From NCBI GenBank assembly GCA_002269645.1, contig NIVC01002523.1, positions 100,967 to 164,966 on the forward strand: a DNA stretch of 64,000 bases, given 5' to 3'. The notes beneath the pieces are model-generated. The model was not told the origin of the DNA. It did no database searches and was given only the letters and a program-made list of their open reading frames with translations. The stretch comes from Macrostomum lignano. Lineage: Eukaryota. The position numbers and the translations under genes were made by a program. Below are positions 6,001 through 56,526 of the stretch, piece by piece (the stretch's first letter is position 1; each line of letters opens with the position of its first letter).

Positions 6001-8735
6001 AAAAGACCAATCAGACAAAAATGGAAGCTGGAATTTCATTCAGTAAAAAATGATAGCATCAGCGCCAAGGCTCTCACCTTGTGCAGCGTAGCCGAATGGT
6101 CGGCCTCGTCCAAAGAGAGAAAGCTGCTGTCGCTCTCGCTGCGATGATGATGACTAGTGTGGCCGGCTTGCCTGGAGCTGTGCGGCGTCACCGGCGAGCA
6201 CATGCTGGCCGCGCTGACGCTGATCACCTCAACGTCTGACGAGTTGCTCGAGTGTGCTTCGGCAGCTCCGCCTGCGGCTCCTCCGCCAATGATGGCCAGC
6301 GACTCATCCGGCGTGGCTCGCGACTTGCCTGATTGGCCACGGCCGCCGCCACTGCCAACTCCACTGCCGCCGCTGCCGCCGTTCTGCTCGTGACTAGATG
6401 AGCGGCTTGAAGCGGCGGACGCTTTACTGGACTCGTCTAATTCCAGCTCGGCTTTGTCCTCTTGTTGCTCGTCTTCATAGTTGGCTATTACGACGGTATC
6501 GGTGTGAAACTGCTGCTCCCACTGAGCATCGGCGTTGGCGGTTGTTGTCACAGCAAGTTTTGCTGCTGCCACCGCCGCCGCCGCCGCAGCGACAGCTGTT
6601 GGCGCAATCGACTCCAAGTCTGTGACGCTCTGCGGCATAGAGGTCAGAGTTGAGTCGCTCATGCTGGACGACAATGTCAGGCTCTCCGAGTGGCTGCTTA
6701 TCTCCAACTGTTGCCGGTCAAGCTCCCCAGCAGGTTCAGCAGCAGCCGCGGGGGAGGCCTCCGTGATTTCTAGAGCAGCAGCTTGCGGGTCTACCGCCTC
6801 TTTTTCTGCTTCGGCTTTATCTATGACAGGCTCTTGTGTGTCCGACTCCACTAGAGGATTGTCGGTTTCGCTGACAGCCACAGTCTGCTGGCTGCCGGCG
6901 GCAATCTCGGCAAGAAGAATTGCGTTCATAGCCTCGTCCGATCTGAGAGTTTGATCAAGCGCATCTTCTGCATCTATGCTGCTATCCGCCATGTCATTGT
7001 CATCTGTAGCCGACTGTTCTCCCACCTGGGTCTGTTGTAGTCCGTCACCCAGATTACTCTGCTGCTGCTCCTGAAGTTGCGTTTTGTCTTCTGCTTCTGC
7101 TGGCTCTTGCTGCCGCTGCTCCTCTTCCTGTTGCTTCCTTAATTCCAGCTGTTTTTGATGCTCAACGTCTTTCAGATTCTCCAACTTTTGTTGCGTCCGC
7201 AATTCTTCCTCTTGTTGACGCTGAATTTCTTTTTGTTCCTCCTGCTGACGCTGAATTTCTTTTTGTTCCTCCTGTTGACGCTGAATTTCTTTTTGTTCCT
7301 CCTGTTGACGCTGAATTTCTTTTTGTTCCTCCTGCTGACGCTGAATTTCTTTTTGTTCCTCTTGTTGACGCTGAATTTCTTTCTGCTTTTCCTGTTGACG
7401 CTGAATTTCATTCTGTTCCTCCTGCTGACGCTGAATTTCATTCTGTTCCTCCTGCTGACGCTGAATTTCTTTCTGTTCCTCCTGCTGACGCTGAATTTCT
7501 TTCTGTTCCTCCTGCTGATGCTGAATTTGATTTTGTTCCTCCTGCTGACGCTGAATTTCTTTTTGTTCCTCCTGTTGACGCTGAATTTCTTTTTGTTCCT
7601 CCTGTTGACGCTGAATTTCTTTTTGTTCCTCCTGTTGACGCTGAATTTCTTTTTGTTCCTCCTGTTGACGCTGAATTTCTTTTTGTTCCTCCTGCTGACG
7701 CTGAATTTCTTTTTGTTCCTCTTGTTGACGCTGAATTTCTTTCTGCTTTTCCTGTTGACGCTGAATTTCTTTCTGTTCCTCCTGCTGACGCAGAATTTCA
7801 TTCTGTTCCTCCTGCTGACGCTGAATTTCTTTCTGTTCCTCCTGCTGACGCTGAATTTCTTTCTGTTCCTCCTGTTGACGCAGAATTTCTTTCTGTTCCT
7901 CCTGCTGACGCTGAATTTGATTTTGTTCCTCCTGCTGACGCTGAATTTCTTTCTGTTCCTCCTGTTGACGCAGAATTTCTTTTTCTTCCTCTTGCTGACG
8001 CGAAATTTTCTCTTCTTTCTGCTTTTCAAGTTCTTTCTGTCTTATCATCAATTCCTCTTCTGCTTGTTTTTTCTGCTTCTGCTCTTTTAATAGAATTTGT
8101 TCTTCACGCTTTCTTTTCTGCTCTACTCTTAGTCGTTGACGTTGCAACTCTTCTTCTTCTGCTTGATCTGGCAGGTCAACTAGGATATTTTCTGGCGGTA
8201 CAGGCGAGCTCGAATGTGGGGCACTAGGCGATTTTGCTATGGCAGGCTGGTCAATACCGAATGAGCTGAAAAAGTCCGAATGTTGCTTGATCTGGCCACC
8301 GCGTACCGTGCTGTCAGAGCTGTCCGCCACCGCCTCCAGACCTCCGGATGTAGACGTGAGCATGATAGACTCCGAGACCCAGTCGCCAACCATTGACGCA
8401 TCCATCCTAGTAGCGCTAGGCATCCTGTGCTGGCCACTTCCGCTTCCGGTCGGAGACGAGCGGCCAGTTGCTTCCTCCGCCGCTACAGACGATGCTGGCG
8501 GCTTCGATCCCGCAGACAGAGCCGCGGATGTTTCTACAGCAATGCCGAATTGTCCAAAAAAGTCGTCTGGCGAGCCGCCAGCGGACGTTCCCGCCGCCGC
8601 CGCAGCGGCCGCAGCAGCTGCCTCCTCTTCGCGAATGTCTAGCGCCTTATCGATGCGCTTCTGCGCCGATTTCAACGCTTTAGAAGTGGCCGACTGCAAC
8701 TTGCCGACGTCCCAGCTACTGAACCAGCCAGACAT
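1..8735 (-). CDS. TMF1: TATA element modulatory factor 1 (golgin TMF1/ARA160) ortholog, 3' part outside window; exons 8735-6078, 2099-1996, 1279-613, 394-<1
   Basis: N-terminus MSGWFSSW...KSAQKRIDKALDI. Spliced coiled-coil segments DLNSLTEEFTSRIADAERRFQQAVKEKE, LMREGERMAQEQLKASNLLKKLRAREKE and SQPLLRQLESLQKSHSAAQLSWEAVEDQL match TMF1 motifs. All three GT-AG junctions preserve frame (phases 0,2,0). Confidence 0.88.
1298..1970. repeat. Minisatellite, ~33-bp unit GGGTCATTACACCTGCCGCTCTATGTATCCAGT, filling TMF1 intron 2
   Basis: About 19 tandem copies visible; source of spurious ORFs 1171-1858. Confidence 0.95.
2500..3135. repeat. Minisatellite, ~36-39-bp unit (CTACTGATGTACACATAGGAACCGAGGAGACTAGCAG and variant) in TMF1 intron 1
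   Basis: Tandem copies of two alternating variants. Confidence 0.93.
3256..3613. mobile_element. MITE-like element, TIR (TA)GGCTTTTCA...TGAAAAGCC(TA), subterminal GGAACCAGAATCGG repeats
   Basis: Inverted termini at 3256-3266 and 3603-3613; related copy at 47527-47784. Confidence 0.55.
3789..3831 (+). ncRNA. Degenerate minimal type I hammerhead ribozyme motif
   Basis: CTAGACTA-CTGATGA-T-GG(CGAC)CC-C-GAAAC-AGTTC-TGGCCTAG: catalytic core, short stem II, 8-bp stem I with one mismatch; helix III is imperfect. Confidence 0.5.
3985..4290 (-). mobile_element. Diverged copy of tRNA-derived SINE family B
   Basis: Shares GTGTACATGCC, TGTGTGAGTG and GGAATGGGCAG blocks with the copies at 14310, 43128, 50945 and 59888. 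Confidence 0.45.
5365..6000. repeat. Minisatellite, ~29-34-bp unit AACATGTGACCACAGTCAACAAAGACACATTATC in TMF1 intron 1
   Basis: About 20 tandem copies. Confidence 0.93.
7215..8000 (-). repeat. Coding 30-bp minisatellite, about 26 x QQEEQKEIQR, in TMF1 exon 1
   Basis: In frame within ORF 6036-8735. Confidence 0.95.
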
Positions 8736-16060: not shown

Positions 16061-16211
16061 GATTGTAGGTGCATCAAACGCCCAGTACACTGAATATTGC
16101 AATGCTCAGCCTAGGAGTATCTACACCCTAAATGAGTTGATTGCTCTCTGAGAACGGATAGCACGCACTGTCATTATAGATTAACACAAGTGCGAGCACA
16201 ATAATTCTCAG
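16061..16211 (-). ncRNA. Box H/ACA guide RNA, copy 3, upstream of TIMELESS ATG
   Basis: Same architecture: H box AGAGCA, ACA at 16066-16064, 14 nt from the 3' pocket to ACA. Confidence 0.82.
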
Positions 16212-16254
16212 TTGTCGTAATACAGTGTGTGCTGTATTAGTACTGTCTACACTA

Positions 16255-16665
16255 TGTAAACTACCTGAAGATTGTCTACCTGGAACTTCACTACCTGAAT
16301 ACTGTCTGCCTGGCGTTTCACTACCTGAATATTGTCTACCTGGCGTTTCACTACCTGAATATTGTCTACGTGGTTTTTCACTACCTGAATATTGTCTACC
16401 TGGCGTTTCACTACCTGAATATTGTCTACGTGGTGTTTCACTACCTGAATATTGTCTACCTGGCGTTTCACTACCTGAATATTGTCTACCTGGCGTTTCA
16501 CTACCTGAACATTGTCTACTTGGCTTTTCACTACCTGAATATTGTCTACTTGGCTTTTCACTACCTGAATATTGTCTACCTGGAAGTTCACTACCTGAAT
16601 ATTGTCTACTTGGCTTTTCACTACCTGAATATTGTTTACCTGGAAGTTCACTACCTGAGTATTGT
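16255..16665. repeat. Minisatellite, 30-bp unit TCACTACCTGAATATTGTCTACCTGGCGTT
   Basis: About 13 copies; source of spurious ORFs 16128-16780. Confidence 0.95.
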
Positions 16666-16772
16666 CTACTTTTGTTTCGTTTATTCAATTTCAATTAGTA
16701 ATTTTGTTTCACGGTTTCTAGACAGTGACTTAACATCTACCGGTACTGTACTTAATGGTAAAAAAGTGTATT

Positions 16773-16923
16773 TATTGTAGGTGCATCAAACGCCCAGTAC
16801 ACTGAATATTGCAATGCTCAGCCTAGGAGTATCTACACCCTAAATGAGTTGATTGCTCTCTGAGAACGGATAGCACGCACTGTCATTATAGATTAACACA
16901 AGTGCGAGCACAATAATTCTCAG
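16773..16923 (-). ncRNA. Box H/ACA guide RNA, copy 4
   Basis: Essentially identical to copy 3. Confidence 0.82.
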
Positions 16924-23900: not shown

Positions 23901-26900
23901 TGAACATTATATTTTTATTGAAGGCCATGTGTTTGGCAGCCCCCGACTCCCGATTAGGAGTCCCTGACACCCAAATCAAAATTGATGACAAGATCCAACC
24001 CTGACATCCAGACAGGCATCCTGACAGCTAGATCAAAACTTGGCACCCAGGTCTAAACCCCTGACACCCAGGTCTAAACCATGGACACCCAGGTCTAAAC
24101 CATGGACACCCAGGTCTAAACCATTGACACCCAGGTCTAAACCATTGACACCCAGGTCTAAACCCCTGACACCCAGGTCTAAACCATTGACACCCAGGTC
24201 TAAACCATTGACACCCAGGTCTAAACCATTGACACCCAGGTCTAAACCCCTGACACCCAGGTCTAAACCATTGACACCCAGGTCTAAACCATTGACACCC
24301 AGGTCTAGACCCCTGACACCCAGGTCTAGACCCCTGACACCTAGGTCTAAACCCCTGACACCCAGGTCTAGACCCCTGACACCTAGGTCTAGACCCCTGA
24401 CACCCAGGTCTAGACCCCTGACACCTAGGTCTAGACCCCTGACACCCAGGTCTAGACCCCTGACACCTAGGTCTAGACCCCTGACACTCATGTCTAAATC
24501 CCCAATAATATTTTAATGAAACAAATTCTCACCTTAGCATAGCACTGCCGTAGGTCGCTTAAACACTTAGCCAGGTGCACCTCCCCACTAGAGCAGACGA
24601 CATTCTCGCCAGTGTCTTCCAGCAGCACCTCGGCTCCGGGATCGTGCCGCTCTAGCAGGCGCAGCCCGGCCAGCAGGCGGCTCTGATCGGCCGGATTGAC
24701 GCACTCGACTGCCACCCGGATGATGGGCGCCGCCTCCGACGCCATGTCGCTAAAAGCCGGACAATCCAGCGTAGCGCTCAAAGTTGCCGTTTTAATAACC
24801 CGATCGGCGAGACCTTCGACGCCAACAATGGCGCCGGCGCCGGCGCCGGGCACCGATTCGAAGTCGCGACCTCGCATTAGTAGCACTCGGCCTATTGTGC
24901 AAACGCTCGCGTGTCTCAGTCCGGAATCGGACAGTCGTTTCTCAGCGTCCAGCGCGTCCGGCGTCAATTCGGCCAGGCCCGGCGGCAACCGGTCGGGTCG
25001 GTGGCGCGGCGACAGCAGAAACAGGCGATCGCCGGGCCGAACAATGCCCGAATAGATGCGACAGAAGGCTACGTAGACGCTCGGCGAAGAATCGTTGTCC
25101 GTGTTGGAAGCGGAAGCTTCGGCGGCACTTTCGCCGTTGGCATCGACAGCGGCAGCCTTGGTGGCCCGCATTGCCTCCCACTGGCGTCGGGCCTCAAGAC
25201 GGCGCTGCTCAAGTTCGGCAGCCGATGTGGCCGAGGCTTCCGGCGGCGGAGCCGAAGTCAGACCGGCCGGAGCCGGTTCAACAATGCAGCCAGCCGGCAC
25301 GGCCATCATTTTGGAGGCGAACGCGACAAGAGGACCGTCAGGGCTGCAGGCGAGAAAATGCTGACGGAGGCAGCTTAAGCCTGCGCTCTCCGGGCTGCCT
25401 TCAACGCCGCCGATAGTTAGCAGGCGGTTGACCTTGAAGTAGATAGAGAGCAACTAAAACATTATGCTTATGAAAATAATAGCAATACAATATAGACATT
25501 TAGCCTAGCCTTCAATATAATCCGACTGGTTTGGCCACTGGATTGTTGGCCATACAAATGTGCACTATTAAGATTTTAGTCAAGTCTAATAAAAAATGCC
25601 TACCTTATCAGTGCTCAGCTGTCGAGGCGAGGGGCACCTGGCCACAACGGCTTCTAGGACGGCGCGGGCCACCGGCAGCCATTGGGCGGAAAAAGCGGCC
25701 AGAGCCGAGTGCGGATCAGCGCCAGATTTAAGATCGCGCGGCCCAAGGCGGATGTCTAAACTGGCGCACATTTTGCTTATCTTATCGGCATCCCGATTAG
25801 TAACAAAAGTGTCGTAAACTGTCCACAGGTTCTCTAGTACAAGCTGTACGAATAGCGGTTTGCGACCTTTGACGCTGGCGCCTCTGTACACCTAGAAATC
25901 GGAGTATTTATTATTAACATGTTACGCTCGTATTGCTCTGAAACTACTTTTCCTTCAAGTGCCATAGAGTGACTGTTTGGATGAGACAGTTTATATTCAT
26001 TGGATAGAACGCCATATGAATTCTATACCAAAACTCTAACTAGCCTACTGCTAATTAGAAGCAACACAAGGTAAGGCATTAGTAGAACGTAGGCACCAGA
26101 AACATTAATTTGGGGGGGGGGCACGGTTCCTAACCTTTAAAATCATTGCTAAACTGCTATGAAGGAACTGACCTAATATTACAGAAAATAATGGGATGCA
26201 TGTAAAGTTCCGCTGAAATCTCGCCTTCGACGCTAATATTTTGCCTTCAGCACTAAATTGGCGTTAAATCCTCGCCTTCAGGGGGTTGTAACATAGTGTT
26301 TAGAGCGTCGGACTCACGACTTGAAGTTCGGGGGTTCGATTCCCGATCCCACTGAAACAATAGTGTTTAGAGCGTCGGACTCACGACTTGAAGGTCGGGG
26401 GTTCGATTCCCGATCCCACTGAAACAATTTGTGTCCTTGAGCAAGACACTTATAACTCTGCATTGCTTCAGTTCACCCAGCTGTAAAATGGGTACCAGCA
26501 TTAGCTGGGGTAATTGAGGGTGTGTGGCGACCCCCCAGTCCTTGGACTGAACAGCCCTCGCAGCCTTCAGATGCGCCGCGCAATAGCTGCGGCTGAGCCG
26601 TCGGTTGCACACCTGGCCCAATTGAGGCAGGTGTAATCAATTTATCATTATCTCCTTCGGCACTAAATTGGCACTAAACCTTCGCCTTCGCTACTAGACT
26701 GGCGCTACACAGGCTCGAGAATATACTCTGTAGTAGTGGGACTCTTGTCCACTTCTCAAAAACAAAAGTTCCGCGATGCCCGGTAGAACGACATTTAAAC
26801 AGACGTAACTCTGTGGCCTAATAAAAATCGTATACGAAAACACGCCAAAAAAGTTGCTGAAAGCTTTCTAAATCTAAACACCAAATAATTTTCATAGAAA

Positions 26901-28904: not shown

Positions 28905-29219
28905 AGTAATAATATAATAATAATAATAACTGATTACACCTGCCCTAACTGGGCCAGATGTGCAACCGATAGCTCAGCCGCAGCTATTGCGCGGCGCATC
29001 TGAAGGCTGCATACGGCTGTTCAGTCCAAGGACTGGGGGGTCGCCACACCCAACCCTCAATTACCCCAGCTAATACTGGCACCCATTTTACAGCTGGGTG
29101 AACTGAAGCAATGCAGAGTTAAGTGTCTTGCTTAAGAACACATTGTTCTACTGGGATCAGGAATCGAACCCCCAACCTTTAAATCATAAGTCCAAAACTA
29201 ACCACTAAGCTACAACCCC
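28905..29219 (-). mobile_element. tRNA-derived SINE family A copy with (TTA)n-like tail
   Basis: A box TAGCTTAGTGG, B box GGTTCGATTCC, body collinear with 26281-26652. Confidence 0.8.
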
Positions 29220-44700: not shown

Positions 44701-47700
44701 CCCCTCTCCACCATTGTTGCTACATCGCTTCCCTCCAGACGCCAGGCTGCTTACCTGGCGGAGGTGCGAGCCACTCTAAATCAGCGCATGAGGCCCGGCG
44801 AGCTGAGAGCCCGGCTGGCCGGAATGAGAGAACGTCTGGACGACCCGGATCTGCTTTCCACGGAGGTGCTGCTGACCACCCTGCTGGCTTACAGGTTCGA
44901 ATAATCTATCCTTAGCAAATGAAAATCGAAGCTCAACAATATTTTCATGATTATTATTTGAATGAGTTTGATAAAACCGGATTACGCAGAAAGGCGCAAG
45001 ACTACTCGGGCATGGTGACGCTAATTGAGCACGTTGGCGAGCAGTACAACAGCAGCGAGGGGGTCCAGTACTATTACGCATTCGCTCTCAACCGTCGCAA
45101 TCTACCTGGCGATCGCCAGCGGGCGCTTCAAGTAGCCAGCGCGGCTCTGGAAGCTGCCGACCGCCCGGTGCCCTCTCTGTTGGCGCTGCTGGGCCGCATT
45201 TACAAAGACCTCTTCACCGATTCGGACTGCCAGGACAAGGAAACTCTCAGCTTGTCGCTGCACTGGTGCGTTTTGGCTAGTGGACCGCCAAACCACTTGG
45301 ATTAGAAACGATTAAAAAAACTAAATTGGGTTTAATAAGACAGGAAGACATCCGATATCCTACCAAAGATCCTAAATTTACTCCAGATCCAACCAACGAT
45401 CTCAAATCCAGCATAAGTTCTATAAAACAAATTTCAATAAACATAAACGCTTTTCTACTGAGTTTTTTAAACAATTGGATTTTTGCGAAGGGGCGAAACT
45501 TAAGTCCAGGGGCTTCAGGCGTCCTTTGTCTGTTTGACTTTAATATAATTTAATATGCGAGAGAATAATAAAATTTTAAAACTCGCACAGTCCCGGATTT
45601 TGTGTCGAAAAATCCGAATTTCCTATATCTATCTAGCTTGACCTCTTGAACTCAAGTGGTCTTTTGACTCTTTAGAATGTTTATCACGTATCTGGCACAA
45701 GCTGATCTTCTCCCTGCAGGTACAGACAGGCTTTTCAGGCCCAGCCAAACGAATTCTCAGGAATCAACCTGGCCACAATGCTGCTAGCCGCTGGTGAAGG
45801 CGAAAGCCAGGAACTGCAGCACGTTGCCATGGTAATTAACGGGATGCTGGGACGCCGCGGCTCTGTAGAGACACTCACCGACTACTGGCTAGTGGCGTCC
45901 TTCTTTGAAGTCAGCGTGCTGACGGAGAACTATCCGAAGGCCTGCCAGGCCGCCGCCTGCATGCACCATCTGGAGCCGCCGCTGTGGCACCTGCGACTCA
46001 CCCTGGACAAAGTGGCCCTGATTCACCGCTTCCGACAGCCCAAGCCGACGCGGCTGTTCACCTTCTGGCTCGACTATTTCCGGGAGATGGCGGCCGACTC
46101 GCCCAGCCTCGACGATGAAGCTGAGGAAGAGTCTCTGGTGGAGTTGGAAGCTGTGCCCACTGCGGAATTTCTGGCCCTGCTAGCCGAGACTGAGTCGGAC
46201 GAGTGGCCGGTGCGAGTTCTGGTGAGTTTCAGCTAGTCAGACTGGAGGCAAGCAGTCATGCCCGCTACAAAGACCTGTGAGCATGCACACGCACATGGAT
46301 AGGTACGCAGACTCTGATTTCACATGTGGCATGCACAGATAACGCACTCTGTGCCTTGGCCTGTGCATCAGCCTGTGCAGGTACACACTGTGCCTTGGCC
46401 TTCGCGGGAATTAATCAGCCTGTGCAGGTACACACTCTGTGCCTTAACCTTCGCGGGAATTAATCAGCCTGTGCAGGTACACACTGTGCCTTAGCCTTCG
46501 CGGGAATTAATCAGCCTGTGCAGGTACACACACTCTGCCTTGGCCCTCACGGGCATTAATCAGCCTGTGCAGGTACACACTCTGTGCCTTGGCCCTCGCG
46601 GGAATGAATCAGCCTGTGCAGGTACACACTCTGCCTTGGCCCTCACGGGCATTAATCAGCCTGTTCAGGTACACACTCTGTGCCTTGGCCATCGCGGGAA
46701 TGAATCGCACAACAGGCCTCGAGCTAAATTTCCCCGTACGGACCCCAAACTATTGTGACCGCAAGAGTTCGGCGCGTTACCGGCTGAACTACTCTGCCTC
46801 AACTACCTCCGTACTCTGTTGAGAGCCAGCGGGTCAGGCCATTTTGTGCCGGAACCTGCAAACATTTCAAGCAATTTTTCTAGCAGTCTGTGGGATAATT
46901 AGGAATAAATGGAGATTTTATGCTAACTTAACGCACCGGAACGGAACCAATATCTTTCAGAGAAATACAAAAGTTAAAATCAACATAGATTACAATTAAT
47001 TCTTTCTACCGACGCGTTTCGGACCAACAATGGCCATCTTCAGGGTCTAGTGTATTTTTAACACTCACAACAACTTTATAAGTGAACAAATTTTAACATA
47101 GATTACAATTAATTCTTTCTACCGACGCGTTTCGGACCAACAATGGCCATCTTCAGGGTCTAGTGTATTTTTAACACTCACAACAACTTTATATAAGTGA
47201 ACAAATGTTAACAAATGAACAAATGAAAATTCTGCCCATGACATGCCCTTTGGACTGTACAGTTAACATTTGTTCACTTATATAAAGTTGTTGTGAGTGT
47301 TAAAAATACACTAGACCCTGAAGATGGCCATTGTTGGTCCGAAACGCGTCGGTAGAAAGAATTAATTGTAATCTATGTTGATTTTAACTTTTGTTTTTCT
47401 CTGCCTGCTAAAGCGTGCTACCTTACCTCAACAAATTTTAACTATATCTTTCATATTTTTATTAATCGCACTGGCCTGGGGCTGAATGAGACAAAGCCAG
47501 GTGGGATTTTAACTGAACTCTCTATTGGCCTTTTCATATTGCTTGTTCTGGTTCCAGAACCAGAACCAATTTGTGAAGTATAACTTTTTGTCTCCATAAC
47601 TAGAGGGAGATACATGCTATAAAGTTTTTATTATTGAATGACAATCGCCAAGAAGAAAGTGAAAATTGTGCTAAGTGAGGTTGTTAAGGTAGTCAAACAT

Positions 47701-50700
47701 TTAACAGAATTAAATAGTTATACTGCTGTTTTTCTTGGAAGATCCGAACCGATTCTGATTCTGGAATTGGTAATATGAAAAGCCTCTATGAACGCAGATT
47801 TAAGTTCGAATTCGCAATCGTACATGTAAGCCACTCTAATTCCGTTTATTTACGAACCCAGTGTTGAACGAGTGTTGAGGGAGCTATTCTTGGATTTTGG
47901 CACTCGTGCAAGAAGTGAATTAAGTTAGCCTACATAGAACTTATCTATTGTATTTTGTTATTTAAGGTTGAAACATAGACGCTCAATAAAACAATGATTT
48001 GAGAAACAATACCCAGTTTGACACAGTTGCCTCCGGCTTCATTATTAATATGTTCAAATGGATACCGGAAGCCAATTGAATGACTATCGCTAATGAGGCT
48101 TGTAACTCAGGTTCAGGAAAAGGTAGCTCTTCGTTAAAAAAACAATAAAGCTACAATGGCCACCGAGAAGCTCATTTCTAGTGCAACTGTTTAGCCAGAA
48201 GCATCTCGAACGCGATAAAACATCCCCAAATCGCAGGTCCGCAGAGGCTGGCTGTCGGTCCATGGCGTCAGTGAATCCATAGAAGTTGCGACTGAATCAA
48301 GCAGCGATGTCGACGCGAAGTCCGGCGGCCAGTTCCGCCTAAACCTGTCGGAGGACCGGGTGCGCCAGGTCTGCCTGGCCCAGCGCCATCGCCGGGCCGC
48401 CTTCGTTTTCACTCTGTGCGACGATCTGCGCCTGCTGTTTTCCAACCGGCCGGCGCGCTCCGCCTTCTACGCTGCCGTAGCCGCCCGCCTGCGCGGGGTG
48501 GCGCGCGGCGCCGAGCCCGGCCTGCGGAGCGGCGGCTTCGAGCCGGTGTTGAATTTCGACTACGAGTTGACGCCGTCCGGACAGAGGCGGGAGCTCGGCC
48601 GCGGCTCATTCGGAATTGTGTACAGCGCCATCGAACTGAAGCAGCAGGTTGGTGCTGTCGACAAGTCTCAGCTTAGGGCCTTCTTGAACTTTAGGTAGAT
48701 AAAATAGTTGCAATTTCAATAGGATCATAATTTTCTCTCTATAGGGGTTTTTGATGATGCTGATTTCAAATTTGAGCTTCATTTTTTGTAGCTTAAAGCC
48801 AACCACTGGGGCATGGGGAATGGGGGGGGTTTAGGGTGGGGAGAATCTTCATGGGGATCGATTTTACGTACCTAAACTTCAATAGAGGTATAGGGGTCTA
48901 TTGAAGATTAGGTAGATAAATTCGGAGACTCAGGGGGGGGGCAAGTCTCAAGGGGGGGCTGACAACTACCAACAACCGAGGCATGGGGAATGGGGGTGTT
49001 AGGGTGGGGAGAATCTTCATGGGGATTTATTTTACATACCTAAACTTCAGTAGAGGCATGGAGGTCTATTGAAGATTAGATAGATAAATTCGGAGACTGA
49101 GGGGGGGGGGTCCTAGGGGAAAATTCTAAGACTCTAAGACTCTGGCGAAAGTTTCAGAAAAATCGGAAAATTGGAAGTATTTTTATATTACGTACCTAAA
49201 GTTCAAGAAGGCCAATCTCTGTGTGATATTTAAGATGTTTTTAAAGGCTCAATACACTTTGCCCTCAAATGAGTCACTGAGTCACACGACCAATGTACAA
49301 AGGAATCACACAAAATTTAGCCGCATTTGATGGCGGTGTGAACGAGCTTTTAAGAGCTAGTTTAGTGTTGCATGGATGATTTGTACTGCACTGTACAGTT
49401 TCATTGCTTTGCACATGAGTAGCTGGTGTGATTCAATGATGCAACAACTCATTTTTGGAAGACTCTGTGTCTATGTGCGTGCGCGTGTTGATCGCTAATA
49501 AATAAAGACGACTAAATTTCCGCAAAAAACTTTGCCGCTCTGCAGATGAAGATCGCCGTGAAGGAGATCTCTGAGGACCGGGTGCCCCATGTGCAGGCTC
49601 TGCACGAGGAGATCCGACTTCAGAGCCGGCTGCACCACCGGAATATTGTTGGCCTGCTGGGCTCCGTGTCCGAGGCTGGCGTTGTCAAGATCTTCATGGA
49701 ACAGGTGAGAGCGCGGTGCTGATTATGATTGCACTTGTTAAGGTTTAATTGGTAAATGAGATAAACAAAAATGAATCATTTAAAAATTGCCACACTTCGT
49801 GGCGTTCCGTAAGTTTGCAACGAAAACTGGCCTCCAATCAAATTTGCACGATTTTCGAGTGTAGCGTCCTATGAAGTAGTCCCAAATGACCGAATGCTGG
49901 ACTGACTTCAGCTCGCTACACTAAAAATGACGCAAGATTTTCCAACCCTCTCTCAGGCGCACCGGGTCTAGAATGGCGGTTTTCAACGTTGCTGAGTACG
50001 GTATATATATGGAATAAACCTTCAGTTATACTTGAATAAGCACTTGCGAAAAACTTTTGTTTTGAAAAATAATAGATTTTGAAGCCATATCAGAGGCTTA
50101 CGTAGCGGGAAGACCATCTTAGAGAATTAAACCATGACGACTATGGCGACTGTACAAGGTCAAAAAACTACATGTAGTTTATTTCAAAAGTTTATTTTTT
50201 GCTACCTCCCTAACCGGGTTTCTCTCTCGTCTTACGAAATGATAAAAGTTTTTGAAATATTTTAAAATATATGTTCTCGTTCTTCTGGTCTCTCACTTCT
50301 ATGGCTCTATGTCTATTTCAAATATCAATGTGAGAGCCAAATAACTGAGGCGACGGATTCAATTGACTTTTCCTGATGATGCAAACACTTGATGGTAACT
50401 TCAGACCGTTGTATTTGATGGTCACAATCTCGAGATGTTATCTTACAAAATATAATGTCTAAGATGGAATTCCAAATAAGAAGCTCGTTTTGTTCGAGTT
50501 CCAAGGGGTTTCTAAGTGTTCGGGTGAACCTATTGTGGAAGTCTATTGTGGAACGTGGGTTGGTTGTTGTTTTAGTTTTAGTGAGTCAATTTATCAGTTT
50601 TAGTGTTTGGGTTGAGACCCTAGCAGTGTCAATCAAAAGTAGTCAAAGGAGGTAAGCTAGAATGGCGAGGAAGGAAAAGAGAGTCGGAAGAGAGGCGAGG

Positions 50701-53700
50701 CCAGGCGAGCTTCTTGCTTAGTTAACATGAGCTTTTATAGTACTTTTCAGTCTTGATCGCGTTGGATGGTACATAGCTGTTTTTCATTGGTTGAGGTTGG
50801 GGTCGTGTCTTCAGCTTTTGCTAGTTGGAGCGCATTCGTTGGTTAAAATACATTCCATCTGGATGGGAGCTTTCTAGAGCCAAAATGTGTCACTTCATTT
50901 TGCTACCGACAATTTGCTACCAATATGCCTGTAGCAATTGAGGCAACTGGCAACTGAGCGCGCTGACGGCAATTCTGCCCCATTCCGCTGACTCTTGAGG
51001 ACACACAAGCGCGCCAATACTGTGCGCAGGCACGCACTCGTGCACTCCCTCACACAGGGTGCACAGCGGCTCTGACTTCCAGGAATCGAACCAGGGCTTC
51101 GTGGCGCGAGAGTTGGACGTGTTTACCGCTGAGCTGCTCTGCCCTAAACTTAGGACAGTCTTTACCCGTTTGCGAGCTCTCCACTTTGCGGCACATGATT
51201 AAAATTGAACTTTTGTTTTGCACCCCAGGTACCCGGCGGCTCATTGACTGCCCTAATTAAGCGAGTCGGTGCCCTGCGCGAGGACACCACTGCGCACTAT
51301 TCGCATCAGATTCTACAGGGCTTGCATTATCTGCACGAGAATCGCATTGTGCACCGGGACATCAAGTCGGACAATATCCTTGTTAACGCGTACAGCGGTT
51401 TAATCAAAATTACGGACTTTGGCACCAGTAGACGATTGCGGGGTTTCCACAATGCAGTTGCCACCTTTGCTGGAACCTTTCGCTACATGAGCCCGGAGGC
51501 GGCCAACCTCGGCGACGAGGGCTACGGCTATCCTACCGACGTCTGGTCGTTTGGCTGCACCGCCGTCGAGATGGTCAGCGGTCAGCCGCCGTTTAGCGAG
51601 CTGGCCACGCCTCAGGCGGCGTTATTTGAGGTAAGGAACTCTCACTGACATTAACTCGTTTATTGGCCTTCCGGCCACGTCTTTCCACACAAAGGGATCG
51701 TACTATAAAGCTGTCGTAGTGTAAGTTCGATCGTACGTCAGAACTTTTACACTATGGAGATGGGAGTTAAGAAGAATCTTATCTTTCAATGGCTTTATAG
51801 AAGGGGGCCCAATCTCTACTCTCGCTAATGTACATTACGGCTGCACCTATAGTAAATTGTTGACGTCTGCAAACCACTTCAGCGTGTTATAACCTATCTG
51901 TTATGTCAGGGGTCGGCGATTTGACTATTGACAAAATGACTGTGGACAAAATTACTGGCCAACAAAATGATGCTCCTAAATTTGAGCACTTTTTCACCCT
52001 TTTTACGACTACATGTATACTCAGCAACATTGAAAAGTCGCCACCCTTTGCCCCAGTGAGCAGTGTCTTTCGACCAGCGTCTATCACCTGGCCAACCATT
52101 TTGATATTAAAAAATGCTTGAAAAAAAACAATAAAAACCGGGCGGAAGCTTCAATCCATCCAATCTTCGCCCTCCGCTCTTCCCAATCCCTCCTCACCCA
52201 GCCCAATTCTGCGTCGCGTGGCGCAAGTTGCGTCACTCAAATGTCAATACTCAGCTAGAATTTACGAGTATTACGGACTCTCAAAGGTGGCGACTTTTTA
52301 ATGTTGTTGAGTATATGTGTCGTTCGGTGAAATATCATACTGATGCCATTAGTCGTAGCGACGTCAAGTAGAACGACGTTTTCCTGTATACATGCAAAGA
52401 CGGCAGTTCTAAATTTACAATACGGAGCACTTTGTTTCATGGAAAATTTTCTAAAAATTCAAATTAAAATGTTTTTCATGTTCATTTGAATGGTTATGGT
52501 CAATGTCCATGGTTATACGGACACGCTACTATTAAACGCTACTATTAAAACACTACTATTAAAACGCTACTATAAAAATATATTAAAAAAATAATATTAT
52601 TAAAACGACACTGCTGTTAAAACGATGCTATTATTAAAACAACAGTACTATTAAAACAATATTACTCGACTAGTTAGATAATGTTTATGACCAGTTGCTC
52701 CGACCAGTTGCTCCAACCAGTTGCTCCAACCAGTTGCTCCAACCAGTTGCTCCAACCAGTTGCTCCAACCAATCGCTCCATATTCTCATTGGCTTGTCTA
52801 TGTGCATAGGGGAATCCGTCACGACTAAGCAGCATGATGGATGTTCATATATTCTATTGTCTATGGGCTAGGGAAATCCATTAGAGACGCGAAAATCCCA
52901 AGGTCACTTCTAGCAATTGGTCGGAGCCATTAGTCAATGGGTGGAGCAAAGCAAATGGTCGTCATGTTTTTGTTCCTCTTATCTCTATTTTGTCCACAGT
53001 CATTTGTCCACAGTCATTTGTCCACAGTCGAATTGCGGCAGTCAAGTTGTGGCAGTCAATTGTCGTAGACCCTAAACCATGGCCAGAAAAGTAGCGCTCG
53101 TATTTCAACCATTATTTAATTCAGCTGACGTGCCAAGCAATCTACCGTTGTAAAATCAACCTTTAACTAAAAGTCCCTTGTATGGTCAGAATCAGACGCC
53201 GGCTCAGGGGGGTCCTAACTGTACATTCTTTATGTACAGTCTTTGTACATTGGCTGCCCTTAAACAAGGGTTGGCGTCGTTGCTGATTCTATTTTTAGCT
53301 GCGTGTTGGGCCCGTGACTCTAATAGCTCGTATTGATTGAACTCCCCCCTTTTTTGTGCTCTGCTAGGTCACACTAAATTTATACAAGCCATTCTATAAA
53401 AACCCTTTCCTCGGCCGCGAAGCCAGAACTTACCAGAAGCTTTGCACAGGCAGACAACTAACTAGCAATGTCAATAATGTATATTAAATAAATGTAACCG
53501 ATTTAAACAAAAAAGGTTTGTTTGTTTGTCTGTATCATTATTTGAGCTCAGTATTGTATACAATATTTTTTTTGTGACTGGTGCAGTGTAAAGTTTCTGC
53601 AGTATTTTTCGCTATTGATAAAAATATTGCTATATAGATTTAGGGTGCGTGCTTCCTATCACTGCTACATTCTCGTATGTTTCAATAATATTTTATTCAG

Positions 53701-56526
53701 GTAATGAAGATTAAAAATGTAAAATTCTGAGCTATTAAAACACCCAGATCGGTATGTACCGCCGGCACCCGGACATTCCAAACGGATGCAGCGAAGCCTG
53801 CCGCAATTTCTGCTTACGCTGCTTCACCCCGGAGCCCGGCCGGCGGGCCACCTGCGCCCAGTTGCTGGCTGACAGATTTCTGGCCGATGCTGCCAACCAG
53901 CTGATTGCTTTGCACCAGCAGGGAGGACAAGACGGGTTCGTGTTGCTGGGGGACTGGCTATCTGCAGTCTAACTTGCACTCAGCTATGAAGGTACTCCGT
54001 ACGACGGGGATATTTAGTAGCTCCTCAGTTCCCCCTAGGTATTTAGTAGCTCCTCAGTTCCCCCTGGGTATTTAGTAGCTCCTCAGCTCCACCTGGGTAT
54101 TTAGTAGCTCCTCAGTTCCACCTGGGTATTTAGTAGCTCCTCAGTTCCACCTGGGTATTTAGTAGCTCCTCAGTTCCCCCTGGGTATTTAGTAGCTCCTC
54201 AGTTCCACCTGGGTATTTAGTAGCTCCTCAGCTCCACCTGGGTATTTAGTAGCTCCTCAGTTCCCCCTGGGTATTTAGTAGCTCCTCAGTTCCACCTGGG
54301 TATTTAGTAGCTCCTCAGTTCCACCTGGGTATTTAGTAGCTCCTCAGCTCCACCTGGGTATTTAGTAGCTCCTCAGTTCCACCTGGGTATTTAGTAGCTC
54401 CTCAGTTCCACCTGGGTATTTAGTAGCTCCTCAGTTCCACCTGGGTATTTAGTAGCTCCTCAGCTCAACCTGGGTATTTAGTAGCTCCTCAGTTCCCCCT
54501 GGGTATTTAGTAGCTCCTCAGTTCCACCTGGGTATTTAGTAGCTCCTCAGCTCCACCTGGGTATTTAGTAGCTCCTCAGTTCCACCTGGGTATTTAGTAG
54601 CTCCTCAGTTCCACCTGGGTATTTAGTAGCTCCTCAGTTCCATTTTGGTATTTTTTAGTTCCCCAGACCCTCCTGTGGTCTGGTGGTCCCTCGGTACCCC
54701 TGAATATCGACGCACACTTTGCAGGCCCCAGGCCAGCAGACGCCGCATCCTGAAGCTGTACAGTCGCGACTGCGAACTCCGTCAGCGGCTCTGCGACCTG
54801 CTCCAGCAGGACAGGCAGCGCCTCATTGAGTACTGGTCTGAGCTGCTCGCAGCCGATGGCTCAGCTTTCAAAGCCGATGTCACTGCCGAGTTGTCAAAGC
54901 TGCTTGACCGGCTCAGCGCTTACATGCTGGAGCGCCGGCCTGAGCAGCTGCGCGGCCTTCAAACCAACACCTTGGCGCTGCGCCGTCTGGGCCAGGCGGT
55001 GGCCAAAATTTTGGCTGGCAGCCGCCTGCCACCCCATTGGATTCTGGCGTTTGATGCCCTTCTAGAGGAGCTGCGCGGCAAAGTCGGGGTGCGTTTTGGT
55101 TGGGTTGGTTTGGTTTGCTGTGGTAGGACTGTCTCATGCAGGAGCTCTAGTTAGGCTGGGTCTATCATACAGCTGTATGCCAGTTTGCATGTCTTTTTTA
55201 CTTTAAAAAACCCAGGCTGCTTCAGCTGCAACATCCGCCGCTCAGCTACCACCAATGTCGCAGACGGCACCGCTATCAACTGCTCAGTCTACGCCGCCGC
55301 CGCTCTCGGTTCCTCCGTCGCCGCTGCCGCCGCCGCCGCTGCCGCCGCCAACACTACCTGCTCCTGCCGTGTCACGCTCCGACGCTGCCGACTTAGCTGA
55401 GTGGGCGGCCACTACCGCCGGCCTGTCGCCAGCCGAGCTGCTGACTCTGGCCGACAATGACTGGGATTTGGACTCGCTGATGCACTGCGACAAGGAGGAC
55501 CTGCGCCGAATGCCGCTCAGGTACGTCTGAGTGTGACTCTCTCTGTGTGAGGCGTTTAGTGTCTCAAAATCTGCCCAATTTGAGGATTTTTGGTGTCTCA
55601 AAAACTGCCTGAATTGAGGGCTATTGGTGTCTCAAAACGTGCCCGATTTAAGGGTTTTTTGGTGTCTCAACACCTGCCCGATTTGAGGGTTTTGGTGTTT
55701 CAAAATCTGCCCGAATTGAGGGTTTTTTTGTCTCAAAAGCTGCCCATTTGAGGGTTTTTTGGTGTCTCAAAACCTGCCTGAAGTGAGGGTTTTTGGTGTC
55801 TCAAAACCTGCCCAGTTTGAGGGTCTTTATTGTCTCAAAATCTGGTCGATTTGATGGTTTTTGGTGTCTCAAAATCTGCCCGATTTAAGGGTTTTTTGGT
55901 ATTTCAACATCTGCCCGATTTTAGGGTTTTTGGTGTCTCAAAACCTGCCCGAATCGAGGGTCTTTGCTATCTCAAAATCTGCTCAATTTGAGGATTTTTG
56001 GTGTCTTAAAACCTGCCCGAATCGAGGGTCTTTGCTATCTCAAAATCTGCTCAATTTGAGGGTCTTTCGTTTATTTAAATTAATTTAAAAGAAATAAAAA
56101 ATTTTTTTTGCAACAAAACGTTTTTTATAAACTAATTTCTATCTCAAAATCTGTCCAATTTGAGGGTCTTTGGTGTCTCAAAAACTGCCTGAATTGAGGG
56201 TTATTGGTGTCTCAAAATCTGCCCGATTTAAGGGTTTTTTGGTGTCTCAACACCTGCCCGATTTAAGGGTTTTTTGGTGTCTCAAAAGCTGCCCAATTGA
56301 GGGTTTTGGTGTCTCAAAATCTGCCCAATTTGAGGGTTTTTGGTGTCCTAAAATCTGCCCGATTTCAGGGTTTTTGGTGCTCCAAAATCTGCTGTAGAAA
56401 CACCAGAAACACCAGTGCTTTTAGTTGGAATTAGAAATTGTCCCTATTAACCAACCTTTCAGATCTGGAGTTGTCAGCCGGCTTTGGCGGGCGATCGAGC
56501 AGAGACGTGCATCTGTTTTTAAATAG
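41723..56526 (+). CDS. MAP3K5: ASK1/MAP3K5-MAP3K15 family kinase, about 1120 aa; exons 41723-41841, 42457-42568, 43001-43111, 43664-43857, 44739-44894, 44990-45265, 45720-46221, 48237-48647, 49546-49704, 51229-51630, 53748-53935, 54725-55088, 55216-55520, 56463-56526
   Basis: ASK-type segments [56 protein letters not shown]; kinase motifs [41 protein letters not shown]; C-terminal SAM ([13 protein letters not shown]). All 13 junctions are frame-consistent. Confidence 0.92.
43128..43375 (+). mobile_element. tRNA-derived SINE family B copy, ASK1 intron 3
   Basis: A-box-like GCAGCTCAGTGCTAAAC followed by the family body. Confidence 0.65.
43900..44690. repeat. Pyrimidine-rich minisatellite, 20-bp unit TGATCCTCATCTGCTCTTCC, filling ASK1 intron 4
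   Basis: About 39 copies in two variant blocks. Confidence 0.95.
46340..46710. repeat. Minisatellite ~46-48 bp ATTAATCAGCCTGTGCAGGTACACACTCTGTGCCTTGGCCTTCGCGGG
   Basis: About 8 copies in ASK1 intron 7. Confidence 0.9.
47006..47050 (-). ncRNA. Minimal type I hammerhead ribozyme, copy 1
   Basis: Reverse complement CTAGACC-CTGAAGA-T-GGCCA(TTGT)TGGTC-C-GAAAC-GCGTC-GGTAG. Confidence 0.8.
47119..47163 (-). ncRNA. Minimal type I hammerhead ribozyme, copy 2
   Basis: Identical to copy 1, 113 nt away. Confidence 0.8.
47311..47355 (+). ncRNA. Minimal type I hammerhead ribozyme, copy 3, sense to the ASK1 pre-mRNA
   Basis: CUGAAGA core, 5-bp stem II, GAAA, palindromic helix III ACGCGU, GUC cleavage triplet, stem I with a 2-nt bulge. 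Confidence 0.8.
47527..47784. mobile_element. MITE-like copy of the 3256-3613 family
   Basis: Termini GGCCTTTTCATATT / AATATGAAAAGCC; internal CCGAACCGATTCTG..TCTGGAAT.GGTAATATGAAAAGCC shared with 3575-3612. Confidence 0.55.
48802..49115. repeat. Two direct copies of a ~140-170-bp G-rich unit in ASK1 intron 8
   Basis: GGCATGGGGAATGGGGG...GGAGAATCTTCATGGGGAT...TAGATAAATTCGGAGACT occurs twice. Confidence 0.85.
50945..51140 (-). mobile_element. tRNA-derived SINE family B, internally deleted copy
   Basis: A box AGCTCAGCGGTAAA and B box GGTTCGATTCC joined directly to the 3' body. Confidence 0.72.
51909..53072. mobile_element. Nested foldback/MITE-like cluster in ASK1 intron 10
   Basis: Outer GGGTC...GACCC ends with inverted GACTGTGGACAAA subrepeats; inner inverted pairs 51990-52050/52281-52335 and GCTCCGACCA/TGGTCGGAGC; (CCAGTTGCTCCAA)x6 at 52690-52770. 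Confidence 0.45.
54010..54640. repeat. Minisatellite, 29-bp unit CCTGGGTATTTAGTAGCTCCTCAGTTCCA, filling ASK1 intron 11
   Basis: About 21 copies. Confidence 0.95.
55555..56395. repeat. Degenerate ~34-35-bp minisatellite GTGTCTCAAAATCTGCCCGATTTGAGGGTTTTTTG, filling ASK1 intron 13
   Basis: About 21 copies. Confidence 0.93.

Follow-up and report, generated by a model that had tools for sequence, protein, structure and literature searches.

A head-to-head foldback with three predicted minimal hammerhead ribozymes of the Penelope-like kind in an ASK-family kinase intron of Macrostomum lignano

Structure of the element and its host intron

The DNA analysed here, referred to as the window, is a stretch of 64,000 nucleotides from the Macrostomum lignano genome (GenBank assembly GCA_002269645.1, contig NIVC01002523.1, positions 100,967 to 164,966 of the forward strand). 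An intron of a gene encoding an ASK-family MAP3K contains a 446-bp element (46958-47403, assigned to neither strand) that carries three copies of a predicted hammerhead ribozyme of the type found in Penelope-like elements (PLEs). The element is a foldback composed of two arms joined head-to-head with their 3' ends outward, and it is apparent in the inverted repeats, the predicted RNA hairpin and the GC profile, with a GC content of 30-37% compared to 60-70% in the exons flanking the intron. A foldback of about 440 bp was placed here by the original prediction, which was made from the sequence alone, and the coordinates given then are the exact outer ends of the inverted repeat.

Exactly three copies of the 45-mer CTAGACCCTGAAGATGGCCATTGTTGGTCCGAAACGCGTCGGTAG are present in the window, also when up to three mismatches are allowed, and no copies are expected by chance (100 dinucleotide shuffles). 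Copy A (47006-47050, minus strand) is the outer copy of the left arm, copy B (47119-47163, minus strand) is the inner copy of the same arm, and copy C (47311-47355, plus strand) lies in the right arm in the sense of the host gene. Each is an exact match to the 45-mer and is also identified by the two covariance models described below, R1 and R2. The strands and the tandem arrangement of the two minus-strand copies are as originally described. Cleavage of copy A is predicted after C17 at 47011, between 47011 and 47010, and that of copy B after C17 at 47124, which is 113 nt upstream of the site of A on the minus strand. The predicted site of copy C lies between 47350 and 47351. The strand order of the copies is therefore (-)(-)(+), and the distance from one inner cut site to the other is 226 nt.

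Copies A and B lie in a partial tandem (46982-47213) of two 113-nt units with one hammerhead each, for which Tandem Repeats Finder reports a period of 113, 2.0 copies and 97% matches. The direct repeat of A and B has the same start-to-start spacing of 113 nt, and the two units differ by one substitution and a TA indel. Two pairs of inverted arms are found, the first at 46958-47080 and 47281-47403 (123 nt, 99%) and the second at 47095-47212 and 47262-47379 (118 nt, 100%). The right arm (47262-47403, plus strand) is a single 5'-truncated copy consisting of 118 nt identical to B followed by a terminal extension, or tail, of 24 nt. In the left arm this tail occupies 46958-46981 on the minus strand and reads GATTTTAACTTTTGTATTTCTCTG in the sense of the element; it is delimited by the start of the repeat at 46982 and the arm's reach to 46958. 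Its counterpart in the right arm (47380-47403, plus strand), which differs from it by one mismatch, is delimited by the arm ends at 47379 and 47403. Read in the sense of the element, each arm has the hammerhead, then 29 nt common to all copies, and then, in the outer copies A and C only, the 24-nt tail. The tail is missing at the internal junction from B to A, where the shared 29-nt stretch passes directly into the next unit. The truncated 5' ends of the two arms are joined by a 49-nt centre (47213-47261), of which approximately 13 nt contain the CATTTGTTCA motif of the repeat unit and approximately 36 nt are unique, being either filler or a remnant of the target. Just beyond the right end, within 47422-47446, is a stretch of 17-22 nt, CAACAAATTTTAACTATA, with a 94% match over 17 nt (E 0.75) to the unit junction AACAAATTTTAACATAG; it may be a fragment of an additional unit or a chance similarity between AT-rich sequences.

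The host gene is encoded on the plus strand and was identified as an ASK-family MAP3K by Pfam domains in its exons, in agreement with the original prediction. The MAP3K_TRAF_bd domain is found in the exons at 44919-45305 and 45778-46236, followed by the Pkinase domain (51205-51648) and the HisK-N-like (ASK) domain (54645-55154). Exact look-ups of the proteins of two window ORFs gave no match, and of two homology searches with ASK exons one was empty and the other returned a single fungal kinase, in a protein collection that evidently lacks this animal. The host intron is predicted to span 46222-48236 on the plus strand; it would begin with a GTGAGT donor (46222) and end with a CAG acceptor (48234-48236), both junctions being in phase 0. 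In this predicted intron, which is AT-rich (30-40% GC) between GC-rich exons, 736 nt separate the element from the donor and 833 nt separate it from the acceptor. Approximately six or seven coding exons seem to precede the intron. No open reading frame (ORF) of at least 90 aa is present between 46236 and 48360, and the ORFs of the window encode ordinary host genes. A scan for bacterial promoters and terminators was disregarded as irrelevant for a eukaryotic intron.

The same intron contains a GC-rich satellite (46367-46706) approximately 250 nt upstream of the element, with a 49-bp unit (47 and 49 bp alternating), 7.1 copies and 89% matches. Repeats are reported as favoured PLE targets. Elsewhere in the window, long short-period tandem repeats at 1171-1858, 16128-16780, 24033-24516 and 7155-8090 have open reading frames in many frames. 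The last of these codes for a QRQQEEQKEI-type repeat and is part of a long exon, in a gene whose product also has a TMF-type DNA-binding domain. The genome is compact, with large GC-rich exons and AT-rich introns. The sole Rfam match above gathering threshold in the window is a tRNA-like sequence at 29152-29219 on the minus strand (33 bits) with a defective T arm, which is probably a tRNA pseudogene or a tRNA-derived repeat.

The hammerhead motif and its metagenome relatives

The invariant hammerhead core is complete in all three copies, with C3 U4 G5 A6 N7 G8 A9, G12 A13 A14, the A15.1/U16.1 pair and C17. From 5' to 3' the motif begins with the helix I strand CUAGACC, the C3-A9 segment CUGAAGA, an extra U and the helix II hairpin GGCCA-UUGU-UGG(U)CC. 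These are followed by GAA (G12-A14), A15.1, CGCG, U16.1, C17 and the second helix I strand GGUAG. In copy C the 5' strand of helix I occupies 47311-47317, CUGAAGA 47318-47324, the extra U 47325, the helix II hairpin 47326-47340, GAAA 47341-47344, CGCG 47345-47348, U16.1 47349 and C17 47350. The three copies in the window are identical and hence carry no information on compensatory changes.

Helix II, between A9 and G12, consists of five pairs and one bulged U in the register of the family, with the extra U after A9 preceding a G10.1-C11.1 pair that closes the helix. A different register, with an unpaired U and C around GGCCA/UGGUC, had been proposed originally; the version with the extra U, the closing G-C pair and one bulged U is the better description, and the core stays intact in it. 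The putative helix I is composed of CC/GG and an A-U pair, giving three contiguous Watson-Crick pairs, and then tandem G.A/A.G and a U-A pair; an alternative register gives five pairs with a 2-nt bulge. The helix III sequence ACGCGU is a palindrome that pairs with itself at -8.9 kcal/mol, so that two copies of the motif are required for the helix to form. An unpaired nucleotide between A9 and G10.1 and a G10.1-C11.1 pair are among the features, beyond the search descriptor, of the minimal hammerheads of PLEs (Cervera and de la Pena 2014, PMC4209133). The background on these ribozymes that accompanied the original prediction agrees with the same publication.

The Rfam hammerhead families gave no match to this locus, neither at gathering threshold nor at E <= 10 (searched with 1 kb and with a 101-nt slice). 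Clear hammerheads of the PLE type in six metagenome loci likewise escape these models, so the lack of a match here is uninformative. Relatives were instead fetched with the pattern CTGANGANGG-N(8-16)-CCGAAACGCGTC, which was derived from the window motif. The pattern had no matches in viral contigs and at least 120 loci in JGI metagenome contigs. A search of literature text for the core string returned only unrelated primers. Apart from a few coincidences in bacterial coding sequence, the metagenome contigs have approximately 41% GC, are poor in ORFs and contain fragments of mariner-type transposases, and are probably animal host DNA; they hold mostly truncated copies. Their hammerheads follow one plan, with helix I ACUCC/GGAGU, CUGAnGA, an extra U, a helix II of 5-6 bp, GAAAC and GCGUC. 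Hammerheads with an ACAUGU palindrome are numerous as by-catch on the same contigs. In seven loci (L056, L068, L074, L076, L091, L097, L100) the pattern also matches a conserved bacterial coding sequence, CTGAAGATGGCCTGCGG.GA.AA.CCGAAACGCGTCTA.GG. These were rejected as hammerheads due to the lack of helix I or helix II pairing and are regarded as coincidence, which indicates that the bare core pattern is not specific.

An alignment was built from 73 hammerheads of the metagenome contigs, in which the helix II pairs are not imposed by the pattern. Helix II shows 33-38 double compensatory changes per pair, a level reached by 0 of 500 shuffles, and overall 87.9% of the cells of the alignment's pairs are paired compared to 63% in shuffles and 32-42% with the partners slid. 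This strong covariation indicates that the metagenome hammerheads are real structured RNAs. Covariance model R1 was built from all 73 hammerheads. On the window it finds only the three copies, at 32.6 bits (E 5e-7), with the next best hit at 12.1 bits. Its training set depends on a pattern taken from the window motif, and for this reason a held-out model, R2, was built from the 33 by-catch motifs of the ACAUGU type alone. On the 64 kb, R2 also ranks the three copies first, at 21.0 bits and an E-value of approximately 1.2e-3 (rough calibration), with the next best hit at 9.7 bits. The scan with hammerhead models that had been suggested as a check of the original prediction thus came out empty with Rfam and put the three copies first with R1 and R2. 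Both models flag non-standard pairs in helix I (1-2) and in helix II, so that the core of the window motif fits the metagenome family well and its helices fit less well. Taken together, the sequence features and the held-out model support assignment of the motif to the type I minimal hammerheads of the Penelope-like kind, as originally predicted.

A degenerate hammerhead-like motif is present at 3790-3830 on the plus strand of the window and reads UAGACUA-CUGAUGA-U-GGCGACCCC-GAAAC-AGUUC-UGG, with the same CTAGAC 5' flank as in the element. Its scores of 12.1 bits with R1 (E 0.42) and 9.3 bits with R2 are not significant. It may be a decayed relative in which helix II has collapsed and the helix III palindrome has been lost.

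Among the metagenome loci listed, all seven non-redundant same-family pairs less than 1 kb apart are in the (-)(+) head-to-head order, with no tail-to-tail or tandem pair among them. The two cut sites of a pair are separated by 186-606 nt, and the arms measure approximately 90-120 nt. In L002, L047, L059, L075, L077 and L089, the head-to-head pairs have arms of 90-120 nt with a spacer of 3-270 nt between them. On these contigs it is common for hammerheads of different families to be nested, with no more than a few hundred nucleotides between them, which is consistent with PLEs inserting into one another.

RNA folding and predicted activity

The 446-nt plus-strand RNA of the element is predicted to fold into a near-perfect hairpin of -250.4 kcal/mol (z = -29), and RNAs of the two strands with flanks have energies of -256 and -272 kcal/mol. 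The proposal that the foldback can form long double-stranded RNA is therefore borne out by the calculation. The single motif is less favourable as a ribozyme: its hammerhead fold has an energy of -4.7 kcal/mol compared to -8.1 kcal/mol for the competing minimum free energy (MFE) fold, in which the helix II hairpin is kept with its register shifted by one, and a typical metagenome family member has -17.2 kcal/mol. These hammerhead energies were computed for the separate parts of the ribozyme with nested-structure folding. The 113-nt monomer has an energy of -16.4 kcal/mol and a z of +0.29, and is no more structured than its shuffles.

The order of transcription bears on activity as well. In a plus-strand RNA the two antisense copies are made first and the sense copy C is fully paired with them; in a minus-strand RNA the inverted copy is made first and would capture one of the two tandem ribozymes. 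Single minimal hammerheads show no detectable cleavage in vitro and dimers cleave weakly (PMC4209133). The hammerhead of an Anolis PLE is cleaved only with its protein present and is dispensable for insertion (Frangieh et al. 2024, PMC11167929). Because transcripts of either strand would bury the ribozymes in the hairpin and the lone sense copy has no partner for helix III, the three hammerheads at the ASK intron are most likely inert passengers of the element.

It had been suggested that the plus-strand copy could cut the ASK pre-mRNA. The folding makes this unlikely, since copy C is a single minimal motif with a weak hammerhead fold and no intramolecular helix III, and is predicted to be buried in the hairpin. 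The further suggestion that antisense transcription would release a 113-nt monomer able to circularise holds in principle, but is disfavoured at this locus: one of the two ribozymes needed would be trapped by the inverted copy, the hammerhead fold is weaker than its competitor, and the monomer lacks excess structure and is shorter than animal retrozymes. The only plausible consequence for the host, and the one that the calculations support, is intronic double-stranded RNA of approximately 140 bp. Family models of microRNA precursors give 40-99 bits on the foldback, all below their gathering cut-offs. A microRNA precursor identity was rejected, as these are sub-threshold matches of generic long hairpins and one of them recurs on an unrelated inverted hammerhead pair from a metagenome.

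Origin of the element and comparison with known systems

PLE insertions are frequently 5'-truncated and form partial tandems (pseudo-long terminal repeats, pLTRs), with an adjacent inverted 5'-truncated copy and an optional tail of 30-40 bp (Craig et al. 2021, PMC8557442). In Schistosoma, hammerhead pairs on opposite strands are found 100-700 bp apart (PMC4209133). The layout of the window element, a partial tandem beside an inverted 5'-truncated copy with the 3' ends outward, matches this published structure, which suggests that the foldback is an integration by-product and not the designed cassette that the wording of the original prediction had implied. The element is probably a young non-coding insertion left by a PLE in truncated form, or by a short non-autonomous, retrozyme-like element copied by PLE enzymes, its youth being suggested by arms that are 99-100% identical.

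A route to such a product is offered by the purified Anolis PLE protein, which cleaves and extends both DNA strands and begins reverse transcription at two neighbouring internal sites, the interval between them corresponding to the tail (PMC11167929). We infer that a PLE enzyme would have nicked both DNA strands, and that each 3'-OH would have primed reverse transcription of the template RNA, with a start site located downstream of the hammerhead by a few tens of nucleotides. The outcome would be a head-to-head pair of 5'-truncated cDNAs whose 3' ends point outward. The passage of the left arm through more than one 113-nt unit would imply a multimeric or circular template, or an enzyme that jumped between templates. 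The 24-nt tail, present on the outer copies only, may mark the second of two neighbouring initiation sites.

Several observations weigh against this origin. No target-site duplication is visible in the sequence at the ends of the element, BLAST of the element against the 64-kb window finds no further copy, and no reverse transcriptase (RVT) or GIY-YIG domain is present among the 51 window ORFs of at least 95 aa. Membership in the PLE insertions is supported by the layout but not by the ORFs at the locus, although a 5'-truncated or non-autonomous copy would be expected to have no such ORF. The ribozyme itself has only three contiguous Watson-Crick pairs in helix I and requires a bulge in helix II, and the R1 result is partly circular, given the origin of its training pattern. 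BLAST of the element against the fetched metagenome loci listed finds no similarity outside the ribozyme, so the link to PLEs is drawn from motif class and layout only, and no same-family pair in short-period tandem occurs among those loci. Their ORFs include an RVT_1 domain in 2 of 64 and a GIY-YIG domain in 0 of 64, which leaves the PLE label of the metagenome class to the literature. Finally, the three copies are truncated at nearly the same 5' point and have a 113-nt period. This is better explained by a short, unit-length (retrozyme-like) template that was multimeric or circular than by random truncation of a 3-kb PLE.

The last observation leads to the first alternative, an active miniature retrozyme without long terminal repeats (LTRs). 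The tandem of the minus strand would form a dimeric ribozyme through ACGCGU and cut 113 nt apart, a tRNA ligase would circularise the product, and PLE enzymes would reverse-transcribe it. Retrozymes have been argued to be non-autonomous PLE derivatives, and an active retrozyme has been defined operationally by tandem units with complete hammerheads and an MFE below -5 kcal/mol (Li et al. 2026 preprint). The window tandem falls under this definition, with two consecutive complete hammerhead units and an MFE of -8.1 kcal/mol, and its low GC resembles that of animal retrozymes. The left arm, with more than one unit, also implies a multimeric or circular template. However, known animal retrozymes are 170-400 nt in length with canonical hammerheads (Cervera and de la Pena 2020, PMC7229834), and the unit here has 113 nt and a minimal hammerhead that is not of the canonical loop-loop form. 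On size and hammerhead type it is thus not a member of the retrozymes. Excess structure is absent from the monomer, the tandem ends after 2.0 units and is followed by an inverted copy that would sequester one ribozyme, and minimal PLE hammerheads cleave poorly in vitro even as dimers (PMC4209133). An active retrozyme at this locus is accordingly considered unlikely. Slightly less likely still is an unusually small retrozyme that would be based on a PLE-type minimal hammerhead, have the 113-nt unit as its monomer, and occur elsewhere in this genome as tandem arrays and as a circular RNA, of which the intronic copy would be a rolling-circle reverse transcription product. If true, a circle of 113 nt would be considerably smaller than the known animal retrozymes and smaller than any viroid-like RNA.

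A foldback DNA transposon similar to a miniature inverted-repeat transposable element (MITE), or a local inverted duplication, would account for the long, near-perfect inverted arms around a short unique centre and for the lack of coding capacity, with the hammerhead-like motif being carried by chance or captured and irrelevant to mobility. The genome is rich in short repeats, and another family of small palindromic repeats is found nearby. This family is a 41-nt repeat at 47745-47785 and 3572-3612 (also at 3290-3323 and 47532-47568) that is 95% identical between the first two sites, internally palindromic (GAACCGATTCTGGTTCTGGAATCGG...) and similar to a small MITE-like family. It lies a few hundred nucleotides from both hammerhead-like sites, but its orientation relative to the hammerheads differs between the two, which makes a common larger element unlikely. 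A transposon or duplication is improbable as the origin of the foldback, since its ends have no target-site duplication of any usual length and the motif has family-specific hammerhead traits recognised by the held-out model R2. The head-to-head geometry with 3' ends outward also recurs in all seven of the independent hammerhead pairs among the metagenome loci listed, and an internal tandem unit with a tail on the outer copies only is a PLE trait.

Exploitation of the element by its host, through cutting of the ASK pre-mRNA by the sense hammerhead or through processing of the hairpin into small RNAs or its editing, so that ASK is regulated or related elements are silenced, is very improbable. 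One hammerhead does have the same sense as the host gene, the hairpin is of extreme stability, and the long-hairpin microRNA precursor models score on it, though below their cut-offs. Against this, the single minimal hammerhead is of a kind inactive as a monomer (PMC4209133) and would be fully paired in the hairpin, and the microRNA matches are of the same kind as those on the unrelated metagenome pair. The near-identical arms point to recent insertion instead of conservation, and an intronic position is not special, as approximately 43% of Xenopus retrozymes are found in introns. Nothing found suggests that the element controls the ASK gene.

The least probable explanation is a palindromic chimera produced by library preparation or by assembly from what was a simple tandem or a solo copy. 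PLE structures with complex tandems and inversions are noted as a cause of assembly problems (PMC8557442) and the arms are nearly identical, but they do not mirror each other (two units, which differ internally, make up the left arm, and one unit the right), their tails differ by one base, a unique 49-nt centre separates them, and the flanks are unique intron sequence joining two in-frame exons.

As a PLE-type insertion product, the element is a clean example: it combines twin copies placed head-to-head with a partial tandem and a tail, carries minimal hammerheads and is located in a conserved stress-kinase gene. It is useful for repeat annotation, as the Rfam hammerhead models miss this class and the foldback draws sub-threshold microRNA precursor matches instead. 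Its significance would be greater if the 113-nt unit were an autonomous RNA circle, which would put a lower limit on the size of circular RNAs that carry a ribozyme in animals, or if the perfect intronic hairpin fed a small-RNA pathway directed against the element family.

The window element and the metagenome hammerheads share the core string CUGAnGA-U-GG...CC-GAAAC-GCGUC-GG and a head-to-head arrangement of paired copies. The metagenome helices are cleaner, as in the example with the lower folding energy given above, and none of those hammerheads is in short-period tandem. With the non-LTR retrozymes of metazoans the element shares AT-rich, non-coding tandem units with a type I hammerhead in each, the dimeric ribozyme logic and the proposed dependence on PLE enzymes. 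It differs from them in its shorter unit, its minimal hammerhead with no defined loop 1, the presence of two units only and a monomer that is not unusually structured.

A further counterpart, compared by description, is the atypical hammerhead of the D. virilis Penelope variant, with similar ones in rotifers, shrimps and mosquitoes. Its helix II contains a bulged base, its helix III includes a palindromic insert of 2 nt, and its helix I is very short (PMC4209133). All three are seen in the window motif, where the helix III insert reads A-C-GC-G-U, and near-identical copies suggesting recent activity are a further likeness. The minimal hammerheads of metazoan PLEs in general have the type I topology, the full core, the extra nucleotide between A9 and G10.1, the G10.1-C11.1 pair, a palindromic helix III that forms only in dimers and a short helix I, and their copies are often truncated and in opposite-strand pairs, as in the window. 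They differ from the window motif in having 6-8 clean pairs in helix II, where the window has five and a bulged U, and in helix I, which in the window is interrupted by the tandem G.A or, in the alternative register, by the 2-nt bulge. No PLE ORF or full pLTR is tied to the window copy.

The architecture of PLE insertions is reproduced in the inverted copy lying head-to-head beside a partial tandem, in the constant 3' ends and in an extension that is present on some copies only. The hammerhead also lies only some tens of nucleotides inside the 3' end, at a distance of 58 nt in the window, compared to approximately 85-92 nt from the hammerhead to the start of reverse transcription in the Anolis element. 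In contrast to published PLE insertions, the one in the window is only 446 bp long, has a 113-nt period and contains no ORF remnant, and its 24-nt tail, shorter than the published tails, is present at both outer ends. The element is best filed as a new family member of an already known class, a PLE-type minimal hammerhead in a head-to-head non-coding insertion.

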